DNA of 64,000 bases from sequence record LR756508.1. One strand, 5' to 3'. The notes under the pieces are model-generated. The model was not told the origin of the DNA. It ran no database searches and was given only the letters and a program-made list of their open reading frames with translations. Shown in pieces: positions 7,042 to 51,868 of the stretch. The position numbers and the translations under genes were made by a program. The first letter of the stretch is position 1, and the number at the start of each line of letters is the position of its first letter.

Positions 7042-7854
7042 ATGAGATTTAAAAAGCTTTTGGAAGAAAAAAATCAAGGAAAGCTGTTCGAAAAGCTGCA
7101 TGAGGAGTTGAACTCGGGAAAGTGGATCGTGCGTGAAACAAAGCTTTACAGAGGAACCGATAGGCCAACCAAAAAAATGAAAGTAAAAGACGTGAGGAGT
7201 AGGTCTGGTAGGGAGCCAAAAGACACTGATAACATTGTTGATGAGCTAATTCACCTCTTTTACGACAAGTGTTTTTCGGAGTATCCGAATCGAAGGGAAA
7301 GCGTTTTCGCATCAACCTCCGCTGGAAGCGCCGAATTTTATGGGAAACCTCATCTCGCCTTCCCTCATAAAAATGCCAAAATAAGTGGCAGAAACGCCGA
7401 TCCACACAACGTTTTTGAAGCTCTATCTAGTAAAATAAAAAGAATTAAAAAAATTTGGCTTAAAAACAAGGAACGGATAAACAAAGTTATAGGAGAATTT
7501 CCAAAAAAAGACGCCGATAAAATTCGAGATCTATTTTTTCTTCTTTCTGGTTATGACCTGAGCTTAATTCAAAATGAAAGTATTACATGTCCTGAAAAAC
7601 TGGTTAAGTATACCGACCAGCTCCATAAAAAATATGAAGACTTTAGTCCACAGAGCTTGCCTTTTAAAAAGTTTCTCGGTCTTTTAGACGGAGTTGTGTA
7701 CTCGATCAATAGATATTTCGAAAATTTGGAGCTTGGATATCCGAAACCAGACGGCTTTTATGGCGAAATAATGATTGATGGAAAGTACCTGCAAGTTGAA
7801 AAAAACGTGTTTGATGAGTATTATGCTAACTTTGATCATAACCTGGACTGGTAA
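7042..7854 (+). CDS. ADP-ribosyltransferase-like paralog 1 with N-terminal leader
   Basis: MRFKKLLEE; LYRG; SVFASTS..AEFYG; GEIMI. Confidence 0.6.
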   Translation: MRFKKLLEEKNQGKLFEKLHEELNSGKWIVRETKLYRGTDRPTKKMKVKDVRSRSGREPKDTDNIVDELIHLFYDKCFSEYPNRRESVFASTSAGSAEFYGKPHLAFPHKNAKISGRNADPHNVFEALSSKIKRIKKIWLKNKERINKVIGEFPKKDADKIRDLFFLLSGYDLSLIQNESITCPEKLVKYTDQLHKKYEDFSPQSLPFKKFLGLLDGVVYSINRYFENLELGYPKPDGFYGEIMIDGKYLQVEKNVFDEYYANFDHNLDW

Positions 7855-7885
7855 TCCTCTGCGTATATTTCAAATCTGACGCTAA

Positions 7886-8734
7886 ATGAAACTTAAGAGA
7901 GTTCTTCAAAGCTTATTATCAGAATCCAGAACTAAAAGGTTGGAAGGAGTTTATGGGGCTGAAGACCTTTACAACAGGAAAGATTTCTCCTCCTATAGTT
8001 TTGCGAATAGTCAGATTTTTCGGGGAATAGAAGGTGGGCCTGGTTATGGATATATTGATCCATCCAATTTTAAAAGAGAGTCTGCCCACACAAAGAACTA
8101 TTATACTCTAATAATCGATAATTCTGATAATTGGAGTGAATATCCAGACAGATCAAAAAGTATAGTCTGCACTACTGGTCAACGTGCAGCCAGTAACTAT
8201 GGAAATACCTACCTTGTAGTTCCTGAAGGATCTCCAAAAGTTGGTATTGCCCCTGCCAGAGACATCTGGTTTTCTTTTGACCGAAAGTTGAGAGAAATTA
8301 ACTTATCGACACTTTCGGTGCTTAACGAAGTAATCCACGACCTGTCTCTTGTTATTTTAGACGAGAGTCCTCCAGAAAAAAATTACCAAAAGTTTAAGAG
8401 TTTCATTCAAAAACTGGGGAAGGTAGGAGAAGAAAACGGAGAATTTGAGCACATAGCTAAAAATGACACTTCCAAAAACTCAGAGACGTACATGAAAACA
8501 GCAGGCTCTTTCTGTAGGGCCTATATTAAACAGGAAAGGTCTCTATATCAATTTCTAGAGTATATTCTTGATCCGAATGAAAACGCATTTGAAGTTAAAA
8601 AGTATACAAATCCTTTTGAGGTAGAAAAAAATCTAGAAGTTTGGATGACTAGCCCCGCCTTGCTAATCCGCAAAGACAAGTGGGACGAGTTTTTTCAAAA
8701 AGTCATTGGAATGGATACCCCCTTCAAAAAGTAA
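7886..8734 (+). CDS. ADP-ribosyltransferase-like paralog 2 with N-terminal leader
   Basis: MKLKRVLQSLLSE; IFRG; YPDRSKSIVCTTG..ASNYG; LEVWM. Confidence 0.6.
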   Translation: MKLKRVLQSLLSESRTKRLEGVYGAEDLYNRKDFSSYSFANSQIFRGIEGGPGYGYIDPSNFKRESAHTKNYYTLIIDNSDNWSEYPDRSKSIVCTTGQRAASNYGNTYLVVPEGSPKVGIAPARDIWFSFDRKLREINLSTLSVLNEVIHDLSLVILDESPPEKNYQKFKSFIQKLGKVGEENGEFEHIAKNDTSKNSETYMKTAGSFCRAYIKQERSLYQFLEYILDPNENAFEVKKYTNPFEVEKNLEVWMTSPALLIRKDKWDEFFQKVIGMDTPFKK

Positions 8735-8742
8735 ATGGTTTC

Positions 8743-9819
8743 ATGGGTGATAAACTTGAAAATGCAACTTTTCTTTGTGGAGATGCAGAGGACAAGTTGT
8801 CAGAGTTACAATCTAATTCTGTTCAAGTTTGTATTACATCTCCACCTTACTGGGGACTGCGAGATTATGGCGAAAGAGATCAACTTGGCTTAGAAGACTC
8901 TCCCCATGAATACGTTAAAAACTTAACTCAAGTATTTCGTGAAGTGAAGAGGGTACTACATCCATCAGGCACTTTCTGGCTTAATATCGGAGATAGCTAC
9001 AATGGAAGCGGTGGAACAGGCACCAAGCCGAATTTAAGACCAAACCAGAAAGAGCACGGGGCACCAGCAACAAGATTTGATGGGCTAAAACCAAAAGACA
9101 AGACGCTAGTTCCATCGAGAGTAGCCCTGGCCTTACAAGAGGATGGATGGTGGGTGAGGCAAGAAATAATCTTCGCCAAAGGCATTAGTTTCTGCGAAGA
9201 TTATAGTGGGACGTGTATGCCAGAGTCAGTATCTGACCGCTGTTCAACCTCTCACGAAAAGTTTTACCACCTGTCGAAATCTAAAAACTACTTTTATGAT
9301 ATAGATGCTGTAAGAGAGTCCTATCAAAGCAAAAAAAGAGATATTGATAGAGCACACGTAACAGGAAGAGGGAAGCAGGACTATTCAACGGCTTTCTTAG
9401 GCTCAGATCAAAGAGATAAAAGTGGGGGATATCCCTTCACAAATGGAGGCAGAAATTTAAGAAGCGTTTGGACTATAAACCCTTCGCAGTTCAAAGGTGC
9501 TCATTTTGCCGTGTTTCCTTTAGATCTTGTTGAACCGCCAGTAAAAGCTGGAAGTCCTTCTGGTGGCGTCTGCACCGAGTGCAAAATTCCCTACAGAAAA
9601 GTAGACGGCAAGTGGGCAAAAAGATGTGATTGCGAAACGGATGAGACAGAGCCTGCTACTATTTTAGATCCTTTCATGGGAGCAGGAACAACTGGAATTG
9701 CAGCCTTAAAACATGGAAGAAGGTTTGTCGGAATAGATATAAACGATGAATACATCGAAATGGCAAAAAACCGAATACGAAAACATGAAGAGGTTCCGTT
9801 AAGTCACGACTGGTGGTAG
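8743..9819 (+). CDS. Beta-class N4-C/N6-A DNA methyltransferase
   Basis: CITSPPYWGLRDY (motif IV), HFAVFPLDLV, ILDPFMGAGTTG (motif I). ATG 8743 is a more plausible start than 8680. Confidence 0.9.
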   Translation: MGDKLENATFLCGDAEDKLSELQSNSVQVCITSPPYWGLRDYGERDQLGLEDSPHEYVKNLTQVFREVKRVLHPSGTFWLNIGDSYNGSGGTGTKPNLRPNQKEHGAPATRFDGLKPKDKTLVPSRVALALQEDGWWVRQEIIFAKGISFCEDYSGTCMPESVSDRCSTSHEKFYHLSKSKNYFYDIDAVRESYQSKKRDIDRAHVTGRGKQDYSTAFLGSDQRDKSGGYPFTNGGRNLRSVWTINPSQFKGAHFAVFPLDLVEPPVKAGSPSGGVCTECKIPYRKVDGKWAKRCDCETDETEPATILDPFMGAGTTGIAALKHGRRFVGIDINDEYIEMAKNRIRKHEEVPLSHDWW

Positions 9820-9836: not shown

Positions 9837-10688
9837 ATGAGGCTAAAGAAAATATTAAAAGAAAAGGTTGAAGATCAAGAAGCTCAAGAGCTTTTTAATG
9901 AGCTTGATGAATATCTTTTGACCGAAAACAAACTTTACCGAGGAATGAGAACTAATGTAGATACTTATATCCAGCGAACAGTAAGAGAGGGAAGGGTTCC
10001 TAATGCCACTACCAAAGCCGCTGACGTCTTTCTCAACACGTTACTTTCCAACCTTTTTCCAAGGCACCCAAAAAGAAGTAAATCTACCTTTGGAACTCCG
10101 AGTAAATCTTTCGCCACCAGCTTTGGAACCACTATCAATATGATCGTTCCAAAAAAGGATGCCAAAGTAAAGTTTTATGAAAGCGACACGTGGCCGAGAT
10201 ACACGTCCTCAATTGGAAATGAAATAAATGCTGGAACTCGAAAACTCAATAAACTCAGCGTCTCATTGGAAAACCAAACTCTTGGAAGAAAGTTTGAGAA
10301 ACTAAGAGAAAATTACAATAAAGAAATTGTTGATTTCATATATGGAGTATGGGAGATGAAAAGCTATGGAGACTCTGGAATTTTTGAAGATGTGATAAGT
10401 CAGTTTTCAAAACTCTCGACGCTATATGGAAATCTGAAATCTTTCTTCGAAACACAAAACGCCGAAGAAAACATAGAAGAAGAGATAATCTTTGCAGCAA
10501 AAAAATATTTACATGCTCTGAACACATTTAAAGAGTATGTGTCCAACGGACACGACGAGTACCACACAAATACTCGCGAAGTTATCGTGGAAGGAGATCA
10601 TCTCATTATTAATCCAAATTGGTTTGATAAGCACTTCGAGTGGTCCAAAGGTAATATTCAATTTAAACCAAAAACAAATGGAGAGTAG
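9837..10688 (+). CDS. ADP-ribosyltransferase-like paralog 3 with N-terminal leader
   Basis: MRLKKILKE; LYRG; HPKRSKSTFGTPS..ATSFG; REVIV. Confidence 0.6.
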   Translation: MRLKKILKEKVEDQEAQELFNELDEYLLTENKLYRGMRTNVDTYIQRTVREGRVPNATTKAADVFLNTLLSNLFPRHPKRSKSTFGTPSKSFATSFGTTINMIVPKKDAKVKFYESDTWPRYTSSIGNEINAGTRKLNKLSVSLENQTLGRKFEKLRENYNKEIVDFIYGVWEMKSYGDSGIFEDVISQFSKLSTLYGNLKSFFETQNAEENIEEEIIFAAKKYLHALNTFKEYVSNGHDEYHTNTREVIVEGDHLIINPNWFDKHFEWSKGNIQFKPKTNGE

Positions 10689-10828
10689 TGGTAATCAGTG
10701 ACTTAAATGTTTGAGTCAGATAGATTCGATATTAAACATGTTTAAATACCTTAGATCAATTAAATAAGGCCACAATAGATGTTATATAGGACAGCATGAG
10801 TGAGTTTTTTCACTATATGAGATAATAT

Positions 10829-11347
10829 ATGGCATCTGAAGACAACAGAAAGTTTGAGTATGGATGTGTGATGGCCAACCTCAAAATTCCATACTGGAAT
10901 TCATTTACAAACAGGATCGAAGAGCAGGACTTATATTATAAGCCTGACGATGATAGTTTTGGCCGGGAAGAAGATCCTCACGTCACTATCTTGTTTGGCC
11001 TGCACGAGCACATTCCCGATTCTTATATCGCCAAGGCTTGCAGTAAAATCAAGCCAATTCCAATTCAACTTAGAAGCATCTCAACATTTACCGATAACGA
11101 AGATTTCGATGTCCTAAAGTTTGACGTGAAGTCTTCATATTTGCACTTTTTAAACGAGGCGTTCAAAAAATTTCCATATACTTCTTCATATCCCTCTTAC
11201 AATCCACATCTCACAGTAGCCTACTTAAAAAAGGAAAAGGCTGAAAAATATTTCTGGCTATTCAACGAAATGCCAACTCAAGAGTTTTTGAGTGAAGAGA
11301 TTGTGTACTCGAAAACTTCCGGAGAAAAGCTTCGTTTCGATCTCTAA
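10829..11347 (+). CDS. 2H phosphoesterase (2'-5' RNA ligase/Acb1-like fold)
   Basis: Two HxT motifs: PHVTILFG and PHLTVAY. Confidence 0.8.
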   Translation: MASEDNRKFEYGCVMANLKIPYWNSFTNRIEEQDLYYKPDDDSFGREEDPHVTILFGLHEHIPDSYIAKACSKIKPIPIQLRSISTFTDNEDFDVLKFDVKSSYLHFLNEAFKKFPYTSSYPSYNPHLTVAYLKKEKAEKYFWLFNEMPTQEFLSEEIVYSKTSGEKLRFDL

Positions 11348-11362
11348 AGTCTATCCTGGTCG

Positions 11363-14300
11363 ATGTATAAAAACATCTATATCGAAGATCGCTATACCGA
11401 TCAACCTACCGTTCATATATGGGATTCTCAGAAAGGTCACATTGAGTTCGAATATAATAAAAAAATGTACGTCCGGTCACCCGATGGCGATTATACATCT
11501 CTTTATGGAGACCCTCTAGCAGAAGTTCCAGCCTCAAAAATCGATTATAATACGAAACAAAGGCTGCAGGATCGGTACGGGGAAGGTGAAGCTATATTTC
11601 AATCAGATCTTCAACTTGAAACTCAAATCTTATCGGAGGTCTACAGGGACGCAGAAGAGCCAAGTGAAGATGTAGAGACCCTCTTTTTCGATATTGAGGT
11701 TTCTATGGAGGGAGAACTCCCAAAGATTAGCACTGCGAATAACCCCATCACTTCAATTGCCTACACAGTCCGATCTACAGGCGAATCTAAAGTCTTAATC
11801 TGGGACCCCGAAAACGAAACAGAAAACTTCGAGCAGGAGGGAGTAGAGGTCATACCTTTTGAGGGGGAAGACCAGCTTCTTTATTCTTTTGTTGAAGAAT
11901 GGAGAGATATTGATCCTGATATAATTTCGGGATATAATGTCGATGGTTTTGATGTCCCTTATCTTTACAGGAGAATCAGTAAGGTAATTAACAACGACTT
12001 TGCAGATCGCTTGTCTCCGATTGAAGAAGTAGATTTTCGAAAAAATCGTGGAGAACGTGGCGAAGGTCGGTTTTTTATTGCTGGCGTCAGCTCTCTCGAT
12101 TACTACTCGCTTTATAAAAACTTTACTTTTACTGAGCTCGACTCATATTCTCTCGATAATGTGTCTAAAGAGGAATTAGATCGGGGGAAGGTGGAGTATA
12201 TGGGAAAAGAAATTGAGACCGAGGATGGAGAAACGGTTGTAATCGAAGATCTTGATGATTTGAAAGAATACGACCCTGAAGCCTTCGTTCGATATAATAT
12301 CGAAGATGCATGGCTTGTTAGAGACTTAGACGATAAATTTGACTTCATTGAACTGGCCAGAAAAATTTGTCACTTAGGGCACGTTCCCTATGAGGACATT
12401 TATATGAGTTCAAGATATATCGACGGCGCGTTTATCACGAGGCTTAATAAACGTGGAATTATTGCACCAAACGTTCACAGAATTGAGGATTTTGAATTGG
12501 ATGGATTTCATTCGGTTGGATCAAAAGAGATTAAGCTAAAAAATGAAATCCATCCTGACATTCCAAGAAAAGGAACAATTGGAATCCGAGTTTCCTCAGC
12601 CACGAAGAAAAAGGTAGATTATGATCGGATCGAGAAAGATAAGTTTATTTTAGAAGAACCAGTTGATTTTGAGGTTTTTGAAGATTATTCGATTGGACTT
12701 GAGTTCGAAGGTGCTTACGTAAAAGAACCTGATCCTGGCCTTTACGAATGGATTTACGATCTGGACTTAACCTCCATGTATCCTTCTATTATTATGTCCT
12801 TGAATATTTCTCCCGAAACGTTGGTTGGAAAAATTTATGACTGGAGCGCTGAAGGGTTTATTAAAGGTGAAAAAGAAACGTATAAAGTTTGGATTTTTGA
12901 TGAAGAAGAGTTTTCGGAATTTACTAATTCCGAGTTGGAGAAATTTCTGGAAGAAGGAGAATTTAGTGTAGCCGCAAATGGAGCTTTTTATAGAAATGAT
13001 AAGAAAGGTATTATCCCTGAGGTTCTTGAAGAGTGGTTTACGCTTCGGCAAGAATACAAGTCTACCAGAAACGAGTGGCGTGAAAAAGAAGGAGAAAAGG
13101 CTGAAGAAAAAGCTGAATACTACGATAAACTCCAACACGTCCATAAAATTTTGATTAACTGTTTCACTCCAGGTCATGAAATCGTAACGAAAGATGGAGT
13201 CAAAAATATTGAAGACGTAGAAGAAGGAGATTTTGTTTATTCAGTAGATCCCGAAACTGGCAACGTTCAGTATAAACCAGTTTCAAGAACCTACAGGCAA
13301 GAAAATTATGACGGAAATGTTGTTAACTTCCAGAATTCTTTCGTAGATTTCTCGGTTACGCCAAACCACGATATGGTTTATGGAGGTGACGAGATCTATA
13401 AAGAAAAAGCAGGAAACTGCCTAAATGATTCTGACGAGAGGCGAATGTGGTCACATGGAGCCCTAAGAAAAGACTCGCCAGTTCACGTCAGCCTCAAAAA
13501 TTTCTGTGATCGTTTGGGTGTCGATTACGAATATGACGTTCAAAAAGGCGTAATCAAAAGTTCAGGTACCCAGTCAACCTGGGTTAAAAATACATACCTG
13601 CTTCCTAACTTTCTAAAACTCTGTGGGCAGTATGTGTTTGGAGCGCAGTCTGAACCTGATGGCACCGATAGTGAATCTTACTCTATAGCTACGGAAAACA
13701 ATAAAAAGATTGAGGTCGAAAACACTATACTCCACAAGATACTCAAAGAAGATTTTGGAGAAGAAGCTCAAGATAAAAGAATTCCAGGTTGGATTTGGGA
13801 GTTGGATGGAGTCATTCTAAAAAACCTCTTGGAAACGATCTTTTCTGATGTGGAAAATAGAGACAGCTACCAGTATAAAACTGACCATGAAGAATTCGCG
13901 CAGGATGTAGTAAGACTGGCTTACCATTGTGGCTACAGGGCCGTTGTTGAGAGTCCTGCTAATGAAAATATTAGCTATTATGAAGTGTCAATTTACGAGG
14001 AAGATGGAGAAGTTCCTCCCATTTTAAAAGATAAGGACAGGGAATTAGAAGAGTATGATGGTCCTATCGTTTGTGTTGAGGTGGAAGACAATCATACGGT
14101 CCTGGCAGGAAAAAATGGTAAGTTCAACTTGATTGGCCAGTCGGTTTATGGTATTATGGGGTTGCCAAATTTTCGATTCTACAATGTATATAATGCGTCC
14201 GCCACTACACTTACTGGACAAGCAATTATCAAGTACACACAGAGAATGGGAGATCATTATTATAATAAAAAAATTGGAAAAGACGTTGAGTTTGAAGATG

Positions 14301-14416
14301 AATCTGAGATGAACATTGACTTTAATGAAACCTATTTAGTAATGCGAGATGGGATGAAGATGAAAGTGAAAGGAAAAGAACTTCAAGAGGAAGACGAGCT
14401 TGTAATTGAAGACTAA
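11363..14416 (+). CDS. polB: Family B DNA polymerase, N-terminal part (3'-5' exonuclease, motifs A and B), intein-containing
   Basis: FFDIEV, YNVDGFDVPYL, YNIEDA, DLDLTSMYPSII, KILIN|intein|SVYG. The ORF stops before motif C. Confidence 0.92.
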   Translation: MYKNIYIEDRYTDQPTVHIWDSQKGHIEFEYNKKMYVRSPDGDYTSLYGDPLAEVPASKIDYNTKQRLQDRYGEGEAIFQSDLQLETQILSEVYRDAEEPSEDVETLFFDIEVSMEGELPKISTANNPITSIAYTVRSTGESKVLIWDPENETENFEQEGVEVIPFEGEDQLLYSFVEEWRDIDPDIISGYNVDGFDVPYLYRRISKVINNDFADRLSPIEEVDFRKNRGERGEGRFFIAGVSSLDYYSLYKNFTFTELDSYSLDNVSKEELDRGKVEYMGKEIETEDGETVVIEDLDDLKEYDPEAFVRYNIEDAWLVRDLDDKFDFIELARKICHLGHVPYEDIYMSSRYIDGAFITRLNKRGIIAPNVHRIEDFELDGFHSVGSKEIKLKNEIHPDIPRKGTIGIRVSSATKKKVDYDRIEKDKFILEEPVDFEVFEDYSIGLEFEGAYVKEPDPGLYEWIYDLDLTSMYPSIIMSLNISPETLVGKIYDWSAEGFIKGEKETYKVWIFDEEEFSEFTNSELEKFLEEGEFSVAANGAFYRNDKKGIIPEVLEEWFTLRQEYKSTRNEWREKEGEKAEEKAEYYDKLQHVHKILINCFTPGHEIVTKDGVKNIEDVEEGDFVYSVDPETGNVQYKPVSRTYRQENYDGNVVNFQNSFVDFSVTPNHDMVYGGDEIYKEKAGNCLNDSDERRMWSHGALRKDSPVHVSLKNFCDRLGVDYEYDVQKGVIKSSGTQSTWVKNTYLLPNFLKLCGQYVFGAQSEPDGTDSESYSIATENNKKIEVENTILHKILKEDFGEEAQDKRIPGWIWELDGVILKNLLETIFSDVENRDSYQYKTDHEEFAQDVVRLAYHCGYRAVVESPANENISYYEVSIYEEDGEVPPILKDKDRELEEYDGPIVCVEVEDNHTVLAGKNGKFNLIGQSVYGIMGLPNFRFYNVYNASATTLTGQAIIKYTQRMGDHYYNKKIGKDVEFEDESEMNIDFNETYLVMRDGMKMKVKGKELQEEDELVIED
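13160..14140 (+). mobile_element. Intein 1 in PolB motif B (327 aa, Cys1, ends Gly-Gln, +1 Ser)
   Basis: KILIN|CFTPGHEIVTKDG...VTPNH...VCVEVEDNHTVLAGKNGKFNLIGQ|SVYG; eroded LAGLIDADG-like centre. Confidence 0.88.
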
Positions 14417-14474
14417 AAAAACCAACTACTAAAGTTTTCAGTTCATGGTGGTTTTTAACTTTTAGAGATGAGAA

Positions 14475-15287
14475 ATGAAACTAAAAAAAGTATATGAAAA
14501 CTTAATTTCCGAGGGAAGAACCGAAAAGCTTTCAAAGAAAAAGCTAATTGACATATACAATGAAAAAGTGGGGATTGAGCCTCACAAACTACCTTCCATT
14601 TATCGTGGAAAGAAGTCCAAAATGAAATATGGGTTCGTAGAACCAAGAAAATTTGAAAGAAGTTCTGCATATACCCTGAACTATTACACTCTCATTATTG
14701 ATAATAGTAAGCCCTGGAGTGATTATCCCGAGAGGTCGAAGTCTTTAGTCTGCACCACATCAAAAACGAAAGCTTCCGACTATGGAAGTGTGTATCGCGT
14801 TTTTCCGTTCCCAGGTGCTGAGATTGGAATAACACCAGAGAGTGATATCTGGGATTCTTTTTCTCAATTAGAAAACCAAGTTGATATTGATGATCTTCAA
14901 CACTTCAACTATACACTTAGAAAATTAGGCGAGTCATGCATTGGAAGAAAAACAAGTGATGAAAGTTGGAGTAAGTTTAAAAAAGACTTGAGCCAAATCG
15001 CTAACTGTGACAGTTTTAGTCAGTTGTATCAGACCGGAGAATATCCGCCAGAAATTGATCAATTCATAACTCCTTTTAAATTAAACATAAAAAGACTGGC
15101 TGACTACTTTTTTCCAAACTACACATCTTTTGTAGAAATGTTCGAAAATTTGCTTCATCCCGATAAAAACAATTTTGAGAAGAAGAAATTTGATTCGAAC
15201 GTTACTCTTCCTAAAGATATAGAAGCTTGGACTGATTCCCCTACTTTACTGGTTCGCGATGGCCATTTTCCTAAAGAGCTGGTTTAA
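14475..15287 (+). CDS. ADP-ribosyltransferase-like paralog 4 with N-terminal leader
   Basis: MKLKKVYENLISE; IYRG; YPERSKSLVCTTS..ASDYG; IEAWT. Confidence 0.6.
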   Translation: MKLKKVYENLISEGRTEKLSKKKLIDIYNEKVGIEPHKLPSIYRGKKSKMKYGFVEPRKFERSSAYTLNYYTLIIDNSKPWSDYPERSKSLVCTTSKTKASDYGSVYRVFPFPGAEIGITPESDIWDSFSQLENQVDIDDLQHFNYTLRKLGESCIGRKTSDESWSKFKKDLSQIANCDSFSQLYQTGEYPPEIDQFITPFKLNIKRLADYFFPNYTSFVEMFENLLHPDKNNFEKKKFDSNVTLPKDIEAWTDSPTLLVRDGHFPKELV

Positions 15288-15329
15288 ATTTGTTTGTTGT
15301 TAAAACTTTAATCTTAAAGAGAACATGAA

Positions 15330-16085
15330 ATGAAGCTAAAAAATCTGTTGTCCGAAGACTTAAGAGGCCAAAAATTAAGTTTAGAAAAAACAAAAGAGTT
15401 ATACCGTGAAAACTGTCAGGAGCACGGTTTTAACAACACTCAGATCTATCGAGGCGTTTCTGGACAACCCAAGCTCTATTTCTTAAATCCATCGAGAAAT
15501 AAACGAAGTTCTCCTTCGAGCGATGGTTATTACAGCCTCATCATGGATAACTCTGGATTTTGGAGTGGATATCCAAAGAGAAGTAAAAGTATTATCTGCT
15601 CGACTAGTCAGTCTTATGCTTCGAGTTTTGGAACGCTATATTTAGTTATTCCTTACGACAATTCTAATTTTGGGGTTTGTCCAAATGATGACATTTGGAG
15701 GTCATTTGACTTCTCTGAGTTTGAAGAAATTGATGACTTAATGAATTTTGACAATCATTTGAACAAAATTTCTGAAAAAATTTTGAATGAGAAATTGAAC
15801 AGTACCAATTTCAATAAATTCAAAGGTCAAATAATAGAAATAGGCAGGAAGATCGTAAATAATAAAGGATTGTCTTCAACATCTTTTCTATTAGAGAAGT
15901 ATTTGAATAGCACTGCAGACGACCTGCTTTTTTATATTGAGCGGCTTCTTGATCCCGAAAAAAATGGATTCAAGACTAAAGAATATACTTCAAAGTTTAA
16001 TCTTTTTGGAAACAGGGAAGTATGGTCCGATGGAGAGTTTCTGTTGATCCAGCATGATCTAATTGATTCTTTTAAGAAAAAATAG
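15330..16085 (+). CDS. ADP-ribosyltransferase-like paralog 5 with N-terminal leader
   Basis: MKLKNLLSE; IYRG; YPKRSKSIICSTS..ASSFG; REVWS. Confidence 0.6.
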   Translation: MKLKNLLSEDLRGQKLSLEKTKELYRENCQEHGFNNTQIYRGVSGQPKLYFLNPSRNKRSSPSSDGYYSLIMDNSGFWSGYPKRSKSIICSTSQSYASSFGTLYLVIPYDNSNFGVCPNDDIWRSFDFSEFEEIDDLMNFDNHLNKISEKILNEKLNSTNFNKFKGQIIEIGRKIVNNKGLSSTSFLLEKYLNSTADDLLFYIERLLDPEKNGFKTKEYTSKFNLFGNREVWSDGEFLLIQHDLIDSFKKK

Positions 16086-16090
16086 AAAAA

Positions 16091-16486
16091 ATGGTTATGG
16101 AGCACAAAAACTTGATACAAAAAGCGAGGAAAGCGAGAGAAAAAGCGTTTTGTCCATATAGCGAGTATCCAGTTGGAGCCGCTGTAGAGACTAATGAGGA
16201 CGTTTTTACTGGAGCTAACATCGAGGTTTCAGGACGTTCTACTTCGGTCCATGCTGAAATGCTTGCTTTTTTTCAAGCCGTTTATAACGGAGCGGAAGAA
16301 TTTCATAAAATGGCAGTTTCGCCGAAAAATCAGAGCGGAGAAGCGATTTGTGGGCTATGTCAACACACTGTTGCTCAGTTCACAGATGAACTGCTCATAA
16401 TTGAGGACTGTGGAGAAGAAGACCCTGAAACTTACAGATTATCCGAATTGATAGGACCTGCATATAGCCCCTCAACGAGGCATTAA
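16091..16486 (+). CDS. cdd: Cytidine deaminase
   Basis: AFCPYSEYPVGAA, GANIE, VHAE and CGLC zinc motifs. Confidence 0.88.
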   Translation: MVMEHKNLIQKARKAREKAFCPYSEYPVGAAVETNEDVFTGANIEVSGRSTSVHAEMLAFFQAVYNGAEEFHKMAVSPKNQSGEAICGLCQHTVAQFTDELLIIEDCGEEDPETYRLSELIGPAYSPSTRH

Positions 16487-16544
16487 GAAATGTATCACTT
16501 TTAAAAGAAGCATAAAATTACTGAATTCGAAATAGTGAAAGAGT

Positions 16545-17345
16545 GTGAGATTTAAAGACTTACTTCAGGAAGTTTCGGCTCCTTCAATTGAAAGTTTATC
16601 GGCTCAAGACTTTGCGGAGATTTATGCCGAGGCTTGGTATAGAAATTGGAGGCGAGAAGTAAAAAGGCTTGGAGATGATTATCCAAAAGTAAAAAATATT
16701 AGCCACCTGTTTGATCAGCTTGAAAATGAAGTTCATGCAGCAGCCATCCAAAGTGGCCACATAGGTTTTCTTTACGAATGTCTTAAGAATGGACGAATAA
16801 CAAAGAAGATAGCCTCTGGCCAGAGTGGCTTTGATAGTCCTGGAAAAAGAGAACCAGAAGTTGAGTTTAGAGGTGAAAAGTGCGCCTCTTACCAAGGAGG
16901 GTGTTACTATAATGCCTTGGATTTCATGAACAGAACTGAAAGAGATGACGTAGAACTGGCCTATGGACTAATGGTTGGTGAAAGGTTTTTAGAAGGAGTA
17001 TACAAGTCAATCGAGTCTTCGCTCGATTCTAATAATAGTAATTTGAATACAGGACTAACAGAGCACTCTTTTGTGCTGGTAAATGGAAATAAGATATTTG
17101 ATCCTACCCTCCCCCACTCCGAGTTAAAGAGTGAAACTTATGCTTACGAAACTGTTCCTTCTTCGGTTTGGAGAAAGTTTCCACATGATTTTGAAGACAA
17201 AAACTATTCAGCCAACGAATTTGCCGACTATATTGAGGTCGAGTTAGAAAATCATGTGGGTAGAGCTGGAATTAAAAAAAGGATCGAAGAGTATCACGAA
17301 AACTTCACTTCTCAAAAAAAACATTTTTCCTATAGCCAATCTTAA
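16545..17345 (+). CDS. Putative transglutaminase/papain-like (Cys-His-Asp) enzyme with N-terminal leader
   Basis: GTG start, MRFKDLLQE; GGCYYNA ... EHSFVL ... IFDPT in triad order. Confidence 0.5.
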   Translation: MRFKDLLQEVSAPSIESLSAQDFAEIYAEAWYRNWRREVKRLGDDYPKVKNISHLFDQLENEVHAAAIQSGHIGFLYECLKNGRITKKIASGQSGFDSPGKREPEVEFRGEKCASYQGGCYYNALDFMNRTERDDVELAYGLMVGERFLEGVYKSIESSLDSNNSNLNTGLTEHSFVLVNGNKIFDPTLPHSELKSETYAYETVPSSVWRKFPHDFEDKNYSANEFADYIEVELENHVGRAGIKKRIEEYHENFTSQKKHFSYSQS

Positions 17346-17421
17346 AGCGAATTTGACCGAACTTTTTAGTCAATTTTCTTACCTATTTCTGCATTTCTTC
17401 TCTTAATAATCAGTCTTCTGT

Positions 17422-19287
17422 ATGAAAACAAAGAAAATTAAAAATATTCCCGAATCAAAACTGAATCAGGACGGAGAAAAAGAATATTGCGTATACACCG
17501 ATTCCTGCCCCGGTTTTGAGCCTATAGTTGTTAAAAGTAAAGAAAGTGGGTTGATTGACGTAAGACTCATATCAGACCTTGAAAACCGTTGGCAGGAGTA
17601 TCTTGTTTGGAGCGATGAAGGTTTTGTAAGAATTAATAATTTTATTAAAAAACCGCTTCGAAAAAACCTCTTCACTGTCAGGACGCAAAGAGGTGTTGTT
17701 CATGTCACTGAGGACCATAGCCTAATCAAATCTTCGGGAGATCCAATAAAACCAAATAAAGTTGAAGTAGGAAACACGGAGCTTTTACACAAAAAAATCG
17801 GCAATTTTGAGCGGAAGACTGAATTTTCAAAAAAACGTGCTTGGTTTTTCGGATTTTTTACTGCAGTAGAAAATAGTAGATGCTCTAATTCCAAAGAAGA
17901 AAATAAAAAGTTAGATGAGGCTTTAAAACAAAAAATTAATGTATCAGCAGAAACCAAAAGGATAGTAGAGTCCGAAAGTTTCACAAAATCTCCTGTATAT
18001 CCAAGATCAGGTTTTGGAAGAGACTTTCCCTCTGGATCTGTAAATCTGTGTTATACAGAAGACAAAAAACTGAAAGTTCCGCCTCAAATTTTAAATGCCA
18101 AAAGAAGTGAAACTATCGAAGCATTTTTGGAAGGCTACAGTGATGGCGACGATCAGATTAATCGAAATTCTTCTAAAAGAAGGTACTGGTTTGATTCTCC
18201 CGTGTTAGCCCAAGGAATTAACCTTTTATTTAATAAATTAGATCAATTAATGGAGGTTGATTATCTAAGAAGTGATGAAAAAGAAAGTATTGGGTTAAGC
18301 AGCCAGGATTCTTGGAAAGAAGAATCAGAAAAAGTAGAGCAAATTGAAGAGTTTGAATACAAGGGAGATTATGTTTACGACTTGGAAACCGAAAACCATC
18401 ATTTTGCCTGTGGAGTAGGCTCCATTGTTGTCCATAACACCGACTCGGTGTTTTATCCAGCAGAGCCGATTGTTGAAAAGCAGATGCCGAATGTAGACAC
18501 CGAAGATGAAGAGGGTATGACCGATGCAATTTTAGAGATTGCAGATGAGGTCGAGGATTATCTTAACGCCTGCTATAACCATTTCGCTAGAGAATTAGCT
18601 CACATTCCTGAAGATAAAAAGCACTGGTTTGAAATTAAACAGGAGCTTGTAGCCAAGTCTGGCCTTTGGGTTCGGAAAAAAAGATATGCCCAGTGGATTA
18701 TCAACGACGAAGGTGATCCAACAGACGAGTTGGACGTGAAAGGGCTTGATATTATCCGCTCCGATTTCCCTACTGCCTTTCGAGAGCTTCTAGAAGATGT
18801 TATTGTTTCGATCCTTAAAGGCTCGGATAAAAAAGAAATAGACAAAAAGGTTCTCGATTTCCGAGAGAATCTTAAAAATTTGAATCTTGAGGACGTGGCG
18901 AGGCCAACTAAAGTAGGAGACCTTGAAGACTACCATACCGATGATTTTGGAAGAACTCAAAAAGGTACTCCCGCTCACTTTGCCGGAGCGTTAAATTACA
19001 ACGACTTGATCAGGCACTTTGGACTTGAAAAAGAAGTTTCTCCTATCAAAAGCGGATCAAAGATCAAGTGGGTTTATTTAAATAAAAACAATCTTGGCTT
19101 CGAGAAGATGGCTTTCAAAGGTCAAGGAAATCCTAAGAAGATAATAGAGTTTTTAAAAGACAATACTGACTTCGTAAAACTTTACGAAAAAAGCCTCAAG
19201 AGTAAAGTTGAAGCTGTTTATGAAGCTATGGACTGGAACTTTCCATCCGAAAACAAACGGCAGGCTCAGAAGTTTTTCAGCATGTGA
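17422..19287 (+). CDS. polB: Family B DNA polymerase, C-terminal part (motif C, thumb), intein-containing
   Basis: YCVYTD|intein|TDSVF gives YTDTDS after splicing; KKRYA, VKGLDIIRSD; C-terminal QAQKFFSM clamp-binding-like tail. Confidence 0.92.
   Translation: MKTKKIKNIPESKLNQDGEKEYCVYTDSCPGFEPIVVKSKESGLIDVRLISDLENRWQEYLVWSDEGFVRINNFIKKPLRKNLFTVRTQRGVVHVTEDHSLIKSSGDPIKPNKVEVGNTELLHKKIGNFERKTEFSKKRAWFFGFFTAVENSRCSNSKEENKKLDEALKQKINVSAETKRIVESESFTKSPVYPRSGFGRDFPSGSVNLCYTEDKKLKVPPQILNAKRSETIEAFLEGYSDGDDQINRNSSKRRYWFDSPVLAQGINLLFNKLDQLMEVDYLRSDEKESIGLSSQDSWKEESEKVEQIEEFEYKGDYVYDLETENHHFACGVGSIVVHNTDSVFYPAEPIVEKQMPNVDTEDEEGMTDAILEIADEVEDYLNACYNHFARELAHIPEDKKHWFEIKQELVAKSGLWVRKKRYAQWIINDEGDPTDELDVKGLDIIRSDFPTAFRELLEDVIVSILKGSDKKEIDKKVLDFRENLKNLNLEDVARPTKVGDLEDYHTDDFGRTQKGTPAHFAGALNYNDLIRHFGLEKEVSPIKSGSKIKWVYLNKNNLGFEKMAFKGQGNPKKIIEFLKDNTDFVKLYEKSLKSKVEAVYEAMDWNFPSENKRQAQKFFSM
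17503..18438 (+). mobile_element. Intein 2 in PolB motif C (312 aa, Ser1, His-Asn end, +1 Thr)
   Basis: YTD|SCPGFEPIVV...VTEDHSL...AFLEGYSDGD...VYDLETENHHF..IVVHN|TDS. Confidence 0.92.
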
Positions 19288-19404
19288 ATATCGATTTAAA
19301 TGAACAGTTTCACGGCATTATAATAAGTGCTGCCTATACTTATAATTGAATATTGAATGCGGATAAGGTTAACTTAGCTATTTTAATCAAATCAGTTACA
19401 AAAA

Positions 19405-20193
19405 ATGGTTGATACAGTTGTCGAAGAACCTGAAGTAGAAAATGAAAATGAGACTGTCGAAAACGAACAAATTTCAAAAGACAGGCTCACATCTCATATT
19501 GATCGTTATTATCTTGGAGGAAATGTCGAGCACGTCAAGCTTCAAATCCAAGATGGCACTCTAAACTGCAATTTCATCTCAAATGATCAGAGCCTTGTAG
19601 GGAAGTTTGAGGTCGAAGACATGCCTCTCGAAGACTGCGAGCTTGGAATTTACGATACGGCAAAGCTTCGGAAGCTCATTAAAATCCTTGAAGACGAGAT
19701 TGACATTGAGGTCGAGTACGCTGCCGAAAAAGCCAAGGCCCTTCATATGAGAGATAACTTCAAGGAAGTTGATTTCCAGCTTGGAGAGCTTTCTATTATT
19801 CCAGATGCCCCATCTCTTAAGCAGATCCCTGACTTTGAAACTGTTGTAACGCTTGATAACCAGTTTATTTCCGATTTTATTGATGCTGAGAGGGCTTTGA
19901 AAGATTCTTCAACCTTTGCAGTTCAATCGGAAGGAAGTGACGTTGAAGTTATTCTTGGGTACTCTCAAAGAGGGAATACCAATAAGGTGTTCTTAAATCC
20001 TACTACCGAGCGCTTCGAGGAGATGGATCCGACAATGTTTGATTCGTCTGTGTTCTCCGAAATCCTTTCGGCAAATGACGATGCTGAAGAAATGAGTTGG
20101 GAAGTTTCTTCCCAAGGACTTTCACGAATTTCATTTTCTGGTGGCGACTTTGATCTCACGTATTACTTCGTCGCAAAGTCAGAAGCCGTGTAA
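19405..20193 (+). CDS. DNA polymerase sliding clamp (gp45/PCNA-like)
   Basis: 262 aa acidic protein between polB and the clamp loader; LGIYDTAKLRKLIKIL and C-terminal LTYYFVAK resemble phage clamps. Confidence 0.75.
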   Translation: MVDTVVEEPEVENENETVENEQISKDRLTSHIDRYYLGGNVEHVKLQIQDGTLNCNFISNDQSLVGKFEVEDMPLEDCELGIYDTAKLRKLIKILEDEIDIEVEYAAEKAKALHMRDNFKEVDFQLGELSIIPDAPSLKQIPDFETVVTLDNQFISDFIDAERALKDSSTFAVQSEGSDVEVILGYSQRGNTNKVFLNPTTERFEEMDPTMFDSSVFSEILSANDDAEEMSWEVSSQGLSRISFSGGDFDLTYYFVAKSEAV

Positions 20194-20234
20194 TTAAGTG
20201 TATTCTTATAGGAATAAAACCAAACACTACTTTT

Positions 20235-20666
20235 ATGGAAAGACAAAAAGTTTTAGATAAAATTGCTGAGTTGAGTAATCAAATTCATAAAGAGACTCTA
20301 CGTGGAGGCGCAGAGCTAGTTCTATTAAGCGAACGAGCATATGATTCGATTGAAGACGACATTGAAAACAGTATGCTTGACAACAGTCTTCACGTCATTC
20401 AACCAGGTGAGTGGGGTGATCCAGACGGTATCCCTGATTCTCCATGTGATATTCGTGCGATCTATTTTGGTGGAATGGTAGATATAAAACAGATTGGAGA
20501 TAATGTTAATCTAAGTTATGGTGATGATCTAGATGCTGCTGTTAAGGACCAGACAAAAAATGTAGAGAGTGGCGACCCAGATATGATGGATATACCTGAT
20601 ATCGATCTTGGATACACTGATGAACCCGTTGAAGACGTTTCAGAAGAATATACTTTTAAATCATAA
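20235..20666 (+). CDS. Hypothetical acidic protein
   Basis: 143 aa ORF in the operon. Confidence 0.6.
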   Translation: MERQKVLDKIAELSNQIHKETLRGGAELVLLSERAYDSIEDDIENSMLDNSLHVIQPGEWGDPDGIPDSPCDIRAIYFGGMVDIKQIGDNVNLSYGDDLDAAVKDQTKNVESGDPDMMDIPDIDLGYTDEPVEDVSEEYTFKS

Positions 20667-20677
20667 AATTAGATCAA

Positions 20678-22072
20678 ATGTCTGGATTCTTTGGAAAAGA
20701 CAGGGAGATGGAAATATGGGCAGAAAAATATCGTCCCGAGACGCTTGAAGACTATGTCGGAAATGATCATATTAAAGATAAAGTAGAGCGTTATATTGAG
20801 GAAGATGATATCCCTCATCTACTTTTTCATTCTAAAAAACCAGGTACAGGTAAATGCTTAGGTTATTCTGAAATGGTTGATGTAAAAATTGGAGCTGTTA
20901 ATTCCAATGAAAGAGAACTTAGACTTCCAGTAGGAAGACTTTTTGAGCTTCTTGGAATTGACAATAATAAATACGATAAGTTTCAAGAGGTTGGTTGGGA
21001 TGTTTCAATTAAAGATTCGGGTGGAGAGTATGTTAGTATAAACTCGCTTGTAAAAAAGAAAGGAAACGTTTTTTCTTATGAGTTTAAAGATGGCACGACT
21101 ATTACTTGTGATGAAAATCATCTCGTAAAAAACTGGAAGACTGGAGATTTCCAATGCATTTGTAATGTTCAGTTTGTCGAAACTGTTACAGGGAAAAAAG
21201 AAATTGTCGATAAGAAATTTGAGGGGTATAAAGATGTTTATGATTTTTCCTTGAATCATCCTCATGAATACGTGACCTCATCCGGAATTGTTTGTCATAA
21301 TACGTCACTGGCTAAAATTATTGTAAATAATATCGACTGCCAGTATATGTATATCAACGCATCTGATGAAAATAGCGTTGATACGATGAGAAATAAAATC
21401 AAGCAATATGCCAGTAATGTTGCTATTAACAACTTGAATGTCATAATTTTGGATGAGAGCGACATGCTTTCACCCCAATCACAGGCGGCACTCAGGCGAA
21501 TTATGGAAGATTTCGCTCAAACCACCCGCTTTATCCTCGCTTGCAACTTCGTGTCTAAGATAGTGGAGCCAGTAGTTTCGCGGACGCAGTCTTTTAAGGT
21601 TCTCCCCCCAAAAAAGTCTGAGGTAGCTAAAAAACTGGTAGGTATTTTACAAAATGAGGGAATTAAATTTGAAAAAAGTCAGGTTGGATTAATAGTAAAT
21701 CAGTATTATCCAGACATTCGGAAAGTATTTAACAATGCCCAGCAGAATACCATTGACGAAGAGCTTGTGGTGCATGAAGAAGACATGATTGAGTCTTCTT
21801 ATAAGTTTAAACTTCTTGAACTATTAAAAGATAGCTCAAAAAACCAAAACGATCTTTTCCAAGAAATTAGGGAGCTTACTGCAAGTGCTCCAATTGACTC
21901 ATACTCTGACGTGTATCGGTTCTTGTTCGATAAAGCCGACGAGTATGCCGAAGGGCATGTTGCTGAAGTCTACCTCCAGCTTGCCGAGTCTCTTTTCGAA
22001 GACTCAATGACAACTGATCCTGAAATTACTTTCTCTGCCTGCATCATTCAAATTATTGATATCATTCGTTAA
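20678..22072 (+). CDS. Clamp loader AAA+ subunit (gp44/RFC-small-like), intein-containing
   Basis: WAEKYRP, PGTGK|intein|TSLAK, INASDE, ILDESD, RFILACN, SRTQ. Confidence 0.92.
   Translation: MSGFFGKDREMEIWAEKYRPETLEDYVGNDHIKDKVERYIEEDDIPHLLFHSKKPGTGKCLGYSEMVDVKIGAVNSNERELRLPVGRLFELLGIDNNKYDKFQEVGWDVSIKDSGGEYVSINSLVKKKGNVFSYEFKDGTTITCDENHLVKNWKTGDFQCICNVQFVETVTGKKEIVDKKFEGYKDVYDFSLNHPHEYVTSSGIVCHNTSLAKIIVNNIDCQYMYINASDENSVDTMRNKIKQYASNVAINNLNVIILDESDMLSPQSQAALRRIMEDFAQTTRFILACNFVSKIVEPVVSRTQSFKVLPPKKSEVAKKLVGILQNEGIKFEKSQVGLIVNQYYPDIRKVFNNAQQNTIDEELVVHEEDMIESSYKFKLLELLKDSSKNQNDLFQEIRELTASAPIDSYSDVYRFLFDKADEYAEGHVAEVYLQLAESLFEDSMTTDPEITFSACIIQIIDIIR
20855..21301 (+). mobile_element. Mini-intein in the clamp-loader Walker A motif (149 aa)
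   Basis: GTGK|CLGYSEMV...TCDENH...VYDFSLNHPHEYVTSSGIVCHN|T. Confidence 0.92.
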
Positions 22073-35435: not shown

Positions 35436-37289
35436 ATGGTTAATGTTGAGCAGGGAGATGTAAAAGAGGTTTTATCAGGTAAAGAAGAGCACACTTTTGA
35501 TTCGGTTGTTACCGATCCTCCTTATGAGCTTGGTTTCATGGGGAAAAAATGGGATGATAGTGGCATAGCGTTTGATAGGAAGATGTGGTCGGAGGTTTAC
35601 AGGACCATGAAACCCGGCGCTTGGGTCTGCGCTTTTTCTGGCACACGGACCCACCACAGAATGATGGAGGCCATGGATGACGTGGGGTTTGACATGTATG
35701 GCATTTTGATGTGGGTTTACGGGTGTTTGAGTGAGGACACTGAGATATTAACAGAAGACGGGTGGAAGGATCTATACGAATATGATAGCGAAAAGGTGGC
35801 TTGCTGGGATAGTAATAAAAATGAAATACGGCTGTCTTCTATCCATAATAAGTTTGTTTATGAGCACGGTGGGGACATGATCCGCCTCCAAAACTGCTAT
35901 ACAGATCAGCTTCTCACTCCCAATCATCGCGTCTATTATAGAAAAGAACACAAAAACAAAAAAGACCAGTTAAGTAAACAATTTAAGTCAAAAGACTGGC
36001 GTATTGAGCAAGCTCAAAATCTAATAAATGGAGAAACTTTAAACCTTCCGTTATCTTCCTATCATGATGGTGAAGGTATCGGTGGAACACAATATGCTCA
36101 GCTATCAGCCTATTTTTATGCCAGCGGTAAAATTGATGAGGAAAGTAGTAGGGTGAGAATCGTCCAAAACTCTGAAAATCGAGAGCATATAAACCGCCTT
36201 GATAATCTTTTAGAAAAATTAAGAATTAATTTTGAAAAAAAGAAGGGTAAAAATCAACATGAAATTATTTGGCTTATTAAAAAGTCAGAAAATTTGAAAA
36301 AGAGTTTTAATGAAAAAACTCCAGGGTGGAACCTATTATGGAACATGACATTAGAAGAAAAGGAGGTATTTCTTGAAACTACAGTAAATTTAAACGAAAA
36401 TATAACACAGAATCTACATCAAAAAGAACGGAAGAACTGGTTCCAGGCATTATTACACTGTATTGGAAAAGAAGGTATTAACGTTGGAGAAAACGACTTT
36501 CAGTTGAATCTCCATTCGAATTCAACCACTCAAGTTGAGCCTAATAAACAAAGGCGAGTTAAAAATTATAGTGGAAAAGTCTGGTGCGTTGAAACTTCCA
36601 CAGGTGCTTTTATGGCGAGAAGAAACGGAAAAGTGTTTATTACGGGAAACAGTGGGTTTCCAAAAAACCATGACGTTTCCAAAGCTATTGACAAAGAGCT
36701 TGGAAAATACGACGAGCGTGAAGTAGTTGGAAAAAAGTCAACCAAAATCCATTTAGAAAATTTAGGCGATGCTGGATACGGTGAAGAATGGGAAGTAACA
36801 GAGCCATACACCGACGAGGCAAAAAAGTGGGAAGGATGGGGAACTGCTTTAAAGCCTGCCTATGAACCGATAGCACTGGCTAGAAAAAAAGGTGATAGAG
36901 TTAATCCTGATCTCTCGAAGGGTTCCAGATTTTTCTACTGTCCCAAGGCAAAAAGATCAGAGCGAAATATTGGGTGCGAAGACAATGAGCATCCTACGGT
37001 GAAACCTATAGAACTCATTTCTTATCTGGTCCGGTTAATCACTCCTCAAGATGGGAAGGTCCTAGATCCTTTTGTTGGAAGTGGCTCCACTGCTATAAGC
37101 GCAGTATTAGAAAACCGTAGTGGACTCGGGATTGAGTTAGATGAAGAAAGCCACTCCCTCGCTTCTAAAAGAGTAGAGTACGTTAAGAACAACCTGATAC
37201 AAGTCTATGACCAAATTTATAACGATCCTAGTAACAACATAACTAAAAAACAAGCCTCGACAATCGAGCACGGCTTCTGGAGCGAGTGA
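35436..37289 (+). CDS. Beta-class DNA methyltransferase A (intein-containing)
   Basis: VVTDPPYELGFMG, HPTVKP, VLDPFVGSGST. Confidence 0.92.
   Translation: MVNVEQGDVKEVLSGKEEHTFDSVVTDPPYELGFMGKKWDDSGIAFDRKMWSEVYRTMKPGAWVCAFSGTRTHHRMMEAMDDVGFDMYGILMWVYGCLSEDTEILTEDGWKDLYEYDSEKVACWDSNKNEIRLSSIHNKFVYEHGGDMIRLQNCYTDQLLTPNHRVYYRKEHKNKKDQLSKQFKSKDWRIEQAQNLINGETLNLPLSSYHDGEGIGGTQYAQLSAYFYASGKIDEESSRVRIVQNSENREHINRLDNLLEKLRINFEKKKGKNQHEIIWLIKKSENLKKSFNEKTPGWNLLWNMTLEEKEVFLETTVNLNENITQNLHQKERKNWFQALLHCIGKEGINVGENDFQLNLHSNSTTQVEPNKQRRVKNYSGKVWCVETSTGAFMARRNGKVFITGNSGFPKNHDVSKAIDKELGKYDEREVVGKKSTKIHLENLGDAGYGEEWEVTEPYTDEAKKWEGWGTALKPAYEPIALARKKGDRVNPDLSKGSRFFYCPKAKRSERNIGCEDNEHPTVKPIELISYLVRLITPQDGKVLDPFVGSGSTAISAVLENRSGLGIELDEESHSLASKRVEYVKNNLIQVYDQIYNDPSNNITKKQASTIEHGFWSE
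35724..36650 (+). mobile_element. Intein in MTase A (309 aa, Cys1, Gly-Asn end, +1 Ser)
   Basis: WVYG|CLSEDTEILTEDGW...LTPNH...VWCVETSTGAFMARRNGKVFITGN|SGFPK; degenerate LAGLIDADG-like centre (SAYFYASG). Confidence 0.92.
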
Positions 37290-51862: not shown

Positions 51863-51868
51863 AGGGTT

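Follow-up and report, generated by a model that had tools for sequence, protein, structure and literature searches.

Family-B DNA polymerases (PolB) in more than one piece are not new, and neither are charged tails that assemble a split phage enzyme: split PolB genes have been described, and so have split PolB inteins with endonucleases between their halves. In active split inteins, the two fragments associate faster thanks to high and opposite local charges, and disordered pieces then co-fold (PMC11923092). The products of gp43A and gp43B, the two polymerase genes of certain Aeromonas phages, with or without an endonuclease between them, co-purify and are active, according to the summary in PMC2988022. 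In the case of Aeh1 NrdA, the authors speculated that the tails found at the break could be remnants of a degenerate intein (Crona et al. 2011, PMC3045599).

We analyse here a stretch of 64,000 nucleotides (nt), called the window, from the 484-kb sequence of an uncultured phage (LR756508.1, identity 100%). Its family-B polymerase is encoded by two open reading frames (ORFs), at positions 11363-14416 and 17422-19287, which lie in different frames and 3005 nt apart. The reading that we favour, with a probability of about 0.65, is that the two polypeptides are never ligated, and that the remnants of a dead split intein, a tail on the N-half and a head on the C-half, dock them non-covalently. The features concerned are the following:

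11363..14416, + strand: PolB N-half gene, 1017 amino acids, from the ORF list; exonuclease domain, palm motif A, fingers with motif B, then the tail.
14279..14413, + strand: tail, 45 residues (amino acids 973-1017); net charge -10; homology to intein blocks B to N4; the TAA comes next.
17422..19287, + strand: PolB C-half gene, 621 amino acids; head, motif C (broken by an intein), rest of the palm, thumb.
17422..17484, + strand: head, ~21 residues, after which polymerase homology resumes; net charge +3 over the first 12; family motif at the N-terminus.

The N-half matches the Pfam families DNA_pol_B_exo1 (1e-27) and DNA_pol_B (9e-21), and the C-half matches DNA_pol_B (4e-7). Translation of the N-half ends at the TAA in 14414-14416, 45 residues past the end of polymerase homology; the C-half starts at the ATG in 17422, with an in-frame stop upstream at 17407-17409. 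The coordinates given for the split in an initial annotation of this DNA all hold when the ORF list, the stop, the start and the frames are checked.

Relationship of the tail, and possibly of the head, to split inteins

Two profiles were used: A2, made from ten tails, and a local profile made from 47 distinct tails. Compared with the sequences of solved structures, A2 has its best match in 9hth, the fused Aes123 PolB1 split intein (PMC11923092), with an E-value (E) of 4e-4 over chain residues 85-119, and its third match in the Pab PolC intein (E 0.014); both matches begin shortly before block B and extend through the rest of the N-terminal splicing region. The intein of 9hth and the motif-C mini-intein of one relative, L001, belong to one intein family (E 7e-16).

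The same profile was compared with a large library of 1.84 billion representative proteins, where it matches 121 proteins at E<=1e-3. When the match is internal, bona fide intein domains surround it in all nine of the proteins scanned (E 1.5e-8 to 4.4e-4), and the host genes of these nine inteins are polymerase, ribonucleotide reductase and portal genes. Full-length matches at a protein C-terminus number 80: the motif TxxH is kept in 38 of them and not in the 42 others, which draws a continuum from live N-fragments to dead tails. The 47-tail profile, for its part, matches the N-fragments of the split PolB inteins of PTm1, CP21 and MIJ3 with scores of 21.3, 17.4 and 16.9 bits; in all three, the match covers the final ~43 residues of the N-fragment and ends 2-5 residues short of its C-terminus. 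The stretches matched in MIJ3 are those that its authors labelled blocks B and N4 (PMC6892783).

These comparisons establish, at the level of sequence, a homology between the N-half tail and blocks B to N4 of split-intein N-fragments. The initial annotation had aligned the tail by eye with block B of the clamp-loader mini-intein of the same genome, and had named a search for Hint similarity as a check, with a negative outcome counting as a refutation. The profiles return the same alignment, and the mini-intein does exist: it has 149 amino acids (20855-21301) and lies in the P-loop of the gene starting at 20678; the tail profile touches its block-B region only weakly. The search does find similarity, in the solved structures, in the large library and in the three split PolB inteins; in Pfam, positions 49-94 of the 155 positions of Intein_splicing match the tails of L001 (E 0.01) and L002 (E 0.21), both below threshold.

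A different kind of match is seen in very large proteins (1200-4400 amino acids; P0243-P0245, P0248, P0263 and others), which match only the first ~20 positions of A2, between 8 and 29 times each. These are probably occurrences of an unrelated repeated hairpin motif.

The statement, also made in the initial annotation, that the catalytic residues are missing is borne out by the whole family. A block-B Thr or His is found in 0 of 47 tails, the window tail having Asp and Glu there. The tail starts right after the extein, at the strand before block B, with block A and ~75 residues of the N-fragment missing; the head has neither block F, nor block G, nor the terminal His-Asn, and its Met motif leads straight into the motif-C strand. 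Because the block-B Thr or His is gone, and blocks A, F and G are absent, splicing is excluded as far as sequence can show.

What is left of the fold can be modelled. AlphaFold2, applied to the window tail alone, predicts four strands with a predicted local distance difference test score (pLDDT) of 88.4. In a Foldseek search with this model, inteins account for 10 of the top 34 matches, including 9hth, and one of them reaches a template-modelling score of 0.75 over 44 of 46 columns. The head of a relative, folded alone, is predicted to be disordered (pLDDT ~40-47).

The head has its own family motif, a basic one, present in 40 of the 47 complete C-half N-termini. Over these 40 sequences, the successive columns contain Met (40), Lys (35), Ile (32), Lys (32), Lys or Ser (25 and 13), and Ile (30). 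A possible link to inteins comes from P0264, a mini-intein of a ribonucleotide reductase that is the best contiguous match to the tails: right after its block N4, at the position where a C-fragment would begin, stands a head-like hexamer. From this single case, an intein origin of the head is plausible.

Distribution of the split among relatives

As relatives we took the 121 best matches to an intein-free N-half, of which 120 were classified. The tail, a pattern of ~45 residues directly after the helix that follows motif B, is present in 49 of these 120, a conservation that chance would not produce. The 71 others are unsplit, continue straight into motif C, and never have the tail (0/71). All split N-halves carry it (49/49), across polymerases down to 38% identity, and in four close relatives it is 57-86% identical to the tail of the window. 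The tail is found only alongside the split, and always with a head.

The split, treated in the initial annotation as a feature of the window genome, is indeed present there, but it is a trait of the family: it is old, widespread, and common in uncultured T4-like phages. No tail was found in the cultured-phage collection searched, and almost all the genes returned by a scan of IMG/VR for related loci are unsplit. Split and unsplit alleles are interleaved: a rough neighbor-joining tree of 116 relatives requires at least 20 changes between the two states, which suggests transfer or repeated loss.

The gap between the two halves varies widely. It is 138 nt long, with no gene, in L001, and ~260 nt long in L087; it contains one gene in L088, L090, L091 and L092, four in L089 and in the window, and six in L002. 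Among the gap genes of relatives are a DUF559/Vsr-like endonuclease, a SegE-type GIY-YIG/NUMOD3 endonuclease and NUMOD3 proteins, and a homing endonuclease gene lies between the halves in L089, L091, L093 and probably L088. Since relatives have from 0 to 6 gap genes, often homing endonucleases, the four gap genes of the window are secondary, and arrived later at an intergenic site open to insertions. The gap of L002 has, at the same position (14080-15575), two genes sized like the phrog_12810 tandem of the window (14475-16085), the likeness being one of size and place, and two further genes upstream, one of which encodes a 233-residue protein with zinc ribbons.

Three relatives, from different samples, have their C-half gene in two reading frames: L087 (~7838-8775), L088 (~8656-9560) and L092 (8800-9713). 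In each, a single stop accompanied by a frame change interrupts the gene at an equivalent position, and both parts are conserved; the C-half of the window has no such break. Programmed recoding, another split or decay could account for it.

Proposed docking of the halves and competing explanations

The two ends carry opposite charges. The mean charge is -5.3 for the tails and +3.1 for the first 12 residues of the heads, the window having -10 and +3; over nine paired loci, tail charges range from -1 to -10, and head charges from 0 to +5. The comparison of the window with L002 gives a ratio of nonsynonymous to synonymous substitution rates (dN/dS) of 0.20 in the tail and 0.02 in the head, based on 13 and 7 substitutions, and of 0.12 in the adjoining extein. 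Few as the substitutions are, these values point to purifying selection on both tail and head.

We infer a docking role from conservation, from charge complementarity, from this apparent selection and from fold predictions on single chains. It is the best reading because the charges are opposite, because both pieces seem to be under purifying selection, and because the tail is predicted to fold alone while the head is not. The scenario would start with an ancestor in which a split intein sat in motif C of a large-phage PolB, its halves separated by a free-standing gene for a homing endonuclease. Most of this intein would then have been deleted. What would have survived is the C-terminal end of the N-fragment, ~45 residues made up of the strand that precedes block B, block B itself and N4, as the acidic tail, and, probably, the first strand of the C-fragment, as the basic head. 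Tail and head would attract each other by charge and co-fold into part of a Hint fold, and this pairing would dock the N-half, which bears the fingers, onto the C-half, which has motif C and the thumb.

Several observations weigh against this reading. The contact between tail and head, and its role in assembly, are inferred from separate chains. The window tail alone has no Pfam match, so the case leans on the family profiles; every E-value of the Foldseek search is above 1; and the substitutions behind the two dN/dS ratios are as few as said above. On the side of the head, a profile of its 10 residues gives true heads at most 9 bits, and so has no statistical power, and the head-like hexamer after N4, seen in P0264, is not seen in the other 17 internal matches. 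The split intein of PTm1 also has complementary charges, but with a polarity opposite to that of tail and head. Finally, the split junction lies ~9 residues upstream of the known motif-C intein site, and deriving one from the other needs both a deletion in the N-half and a motif-C strand moved to the C-half.

The first alternative is that tail and head are inert leftovers, and that the halves assemble through the polymerase's own palm interface. The split gp43A and gp43B of Aeromonas, which co-purify and are active in the account already cited, agree with it, as does Aeh1 NrdA, whose tails are unneeded for the formation of the heterodimer itself (PMC3045599). However, leftovers of no use would hardly have been kept in every split N-half, in polymerases as low as 38% identical, with the dN/dS ratios given above, a confident four-strand fold prediction for the tail, and opposite charges maintained on the two ends: we consider this explanation improbable.

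It is also unlikely, in our view, that the tail is a selected domain whose partner is not the head but, for instance, DNA or a different protein of the replisome. Some single tails do match, weakly, small SH3-, KOW- or Tudor-like modules, and the contact with the head is a proposed one. But the tail is absent from all 71 unsplit relatives and always paired with a conserved head of opposite charge; moreover, the homologs of the tail in live inteins bind exactly such a strand of the C-fragment.

Natural split inteins are found in the same gene of other large phages, and the remnants might accordingly be read as an active split intein that ligates the halves. This is very hard to sustain for a tail that has neither block A nor the N-terminal nucleophile, with the block-B residues missing from all 47 tails, and for a head stripped of block F, block G and His-Asn; together, the two amount to ~65 residues, against the 130-150 of a Hint fold (PMC11923092).

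Equally remote is the idea that the tail arose as a copy of the polymerase's own motif-C region and has since degenerated. BLASTP and tblastn alignments with T4 gp43 and with the P-TIM40 polymerase run over the tail with 32-34% identity, and MAFFT puts the motif-C strand of two relatives, P0024 and P0030, under the first strand of the tail. But the extension of the BLASTP and tblastn alignments over the tail adds almost no score, and we rejected this homology as a low-score extension; among 8802 ORFs, the tail profile matches inteins and not unsplit polymerases, and the significant matches over the whole library are inteins in three unrelated host genes.

Lastly, an intron joining the coding regions at the RNA level, or a recoding event reading through them, deserves next to no credit: self-splicing introns can occur in phage polymerase genes (PMC7824862), but no Rfam family is found in 11000-20000 at E<=1, nor in six related loci at gathering score, four protein-coding genes occupy the gap, the two halves do not share a frame, the C-half starts at a conserved Met of its own, and the length of the gap goes from 138 nt to six genes.

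Returning to the proposed docking remnants, how did the split form arise? In the form seen in the majority of cases, the N-half would have lost its motif-C strand together with the beginning of the intein, by deletion, and the motif-C strand of the C-half could have come by recombination with an unsplit allele. In P0024 and P0030, motif C is still in the N-half, and a shorter tail stands directly at the known motif-C intein site, a form that is a possible intermediate; both contigs break off within a gene for a Vsr-like endonuclease or directly behind it, before any partner.

A more tentative conjecture, which we hold to be possible but rather doubtful, is that the cassette formed by the tail, a stop, an optional endonuclease gene, a start and the head is a mobile element, the non-splicing descendant of an intein. 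It would spread between polymerase alleles by gene conversion driven by the endonuclease, bringing with it a non-covalent fix for the break that it causes. The conjecture fits the interleaved alleles, the endonuclease genes in the gaps of relatives, and an observation made in L089: its DUF559 gap endonuclease gene (8987-9409) and its C-half gene (10515-11447) share their first six codons and have near-identical upstream bases. The head and its start region may have been shared with a mobile cassette.

Gap genes, neighbouring inteins and known systems

The gap of the window holds four genes, and each half of the polymerase holds a complete intein of its own:

14475..15287, + strand: gap gene 1, 270 amino acids, unknown function; phrog_12810, paralog of gap gene 2.
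15330..16085, + strand: gap gene 2, 251 amino acids; phrog_12810, paralog of gap gene 1 (33% identity, E 5e-42).
16091..16486, + strand: gap gene 3, 131 amino acids, cytidine/deoxycytidylate deaminase family; Pfam dCMP_cyt_deam_1 (1e-11).
16545..17345, + strand: gap gene 4, 266 amino acids, unknown function; its L001 ortholog sits past the C-half.
13160..14140, + strand: intein 1, 327 amino acids, inside motif B of the N-half; first residue Cys, Gly-Gln at the end, then Ser.
17503..18438, + strand: intein 2, 312 amino acids, inside motif C of the C-half; first residue Ser, His-Asn at the end, then Thr.

The four gap genes had been called unrelated, which is true with respect to the polymerase, but not with respect to each other, genes 1 and 2 being paralogs. 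Gap gene 4 is 40% identical to L001:13651-14355 (E 7e-62), a gene that lies outside the gap, after the C-half. Pfam and PHROG annotation find no homing endonuclease gene among the four. A repeat scan finds no flanking repeats across the gap, and promoter-like sites are fewer than expected from shuffled sequence. A Shine-Dalgarno-like motif is found upstream of none of the ten gene starts inspected in 10829-20678; since no inspected gene has one, its absence before the C-half is uninformative.

Read across the two inteins, motifs B and C of the window polymerase are present with their acidic and basic residues; motif B aligns with that of T4 gp43, and the motifs are uninterrupted in intein-free relatives. 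Motif C does lie on the C-half, as had been announced, but not in one piece: the motif YTDTDS quoted for it is the spliced form, with the 312 residues of intein 2 removed.

The start of intein 1 has matches to the Pfam families Hint, PT-HINT and Hint_2, all below threshold. In relatives, its site is either empty (P0005) or occupied by versions of 141-369 amino acids, and mini-inteins (141-143 amino acids) and large inteins (324-369 amino acids) share one position. Intein 1 and all nine inteins of relatives at this site end with Gly-Gln instead of His-Asn. Intein 2 matches Intein_splicing at 1e-6, again below threshold, and L089, L090 and L091 have intein-free alleles at motif C. The motif-C intein of the window (17503-18438, 312 amino acids) and that of L001 (12299-12796, 166 amino acids) are different inteins, at sites two residues apart: in motif C of the C-half, each of the two lineages thus has an intein of its own, at a site next to that of the other. 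Elsewhere in the window, ORFs 35436-37286 and 51863-54217 have a common intein-like C-terminal end, with Gly-Asn before Ser and a Trp-Cys motif preceding; they may hold additional inteins that belong to another class.

The usual view of inteins knows two fates, splicing and decay. The PolB remnants look like a third fate, in which part of a split-intein fold, stripped of its chemistry, is kept for finding and binding its partner. A literature search, which covered few subscription journals, found no published intein remnant in such an assembly role. If the docking role is true, it explains how an essential polymerase tolerates a cut between motifs B and C, it provides one route by which gene fission by a mobile element becomes permanent, and it offers protein engineers a natural library of small, diverged, charge-matched peptide pairs. 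There is also a consequence for annotation, as gene callers label such PolB halves fragments or hypothetical proteins.

Among known systems, the archaeal split polymerases, which PMC2677866 cites, also have a family-B polymerase in two genes, in Methanothermobacter and in Nanoarchaeum, the latter with a split intein; by that description, they belong to another lineage and have either no intein trace or a working split intein. Closer to the window are the genes gp43A and gp43B of Aeromonas phages 25 and 44RR (Petrov et al. 2010, cited through PMC2988022), in which a T4-type PolB is likewise made of two genes.

The fractured genes of Dassa et al. (2009, PMC2677866) have the arrangement of L089, L091 and L093, an N-part, a free-standing homing endonuclease and a C-part, and Vsr-like/DUF559 endonucleases are included among them. 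There, however, the split inteins are complete, and were modelled; the window has mere vestiges of the intein halves and no endonuclease in its gap.

The natural split inteins in motif C of PolB are those of Aes123 PolB1 (9HTH, PMC11923092), MIJ3/PA5oct of Pseudomonas (PMC6892783), Tenacibaculum PTm1 and Campylobacter CP21. They share with the window the host gene and almost the same place, an N-fragment ending with blocks B and N4 homologous to the tail, and opposite charges on the two fragment ends; as in relatives of the window, a homing endonuclease gene lies between the halves, of the HNH type in MIJ3 and VSR in PTm1. They differ in their size, ~120 + 39 residues in Aes123 or comparable, and in having kept block A, TxxH, blocks F and G, and the +1 Ser: these inteins splice or look able to. 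Here, there are ~45 + 21 residues, none of them catalytic, the junction is ~9 residues upstream, and the product must stay in two chains.

Aeh1 NrdA (PMC3045599) is the parallel in function: a mobile element has split an essential gene there, and the two broken ends carry unique, oppositely charged tails. The gene is a different one, and the polarity is reversed, with a basic tail and an acidic head. The two cases also differ in their evidence, NrdA having a functional test but no sequence link to inteins, and the window PolB having the sequence link, with a role drawn from sequence and predictions. What Crona et al. (2011) proposed as an idea, without sequence evidence, here has a sequence link to inteins that is statistically solid.

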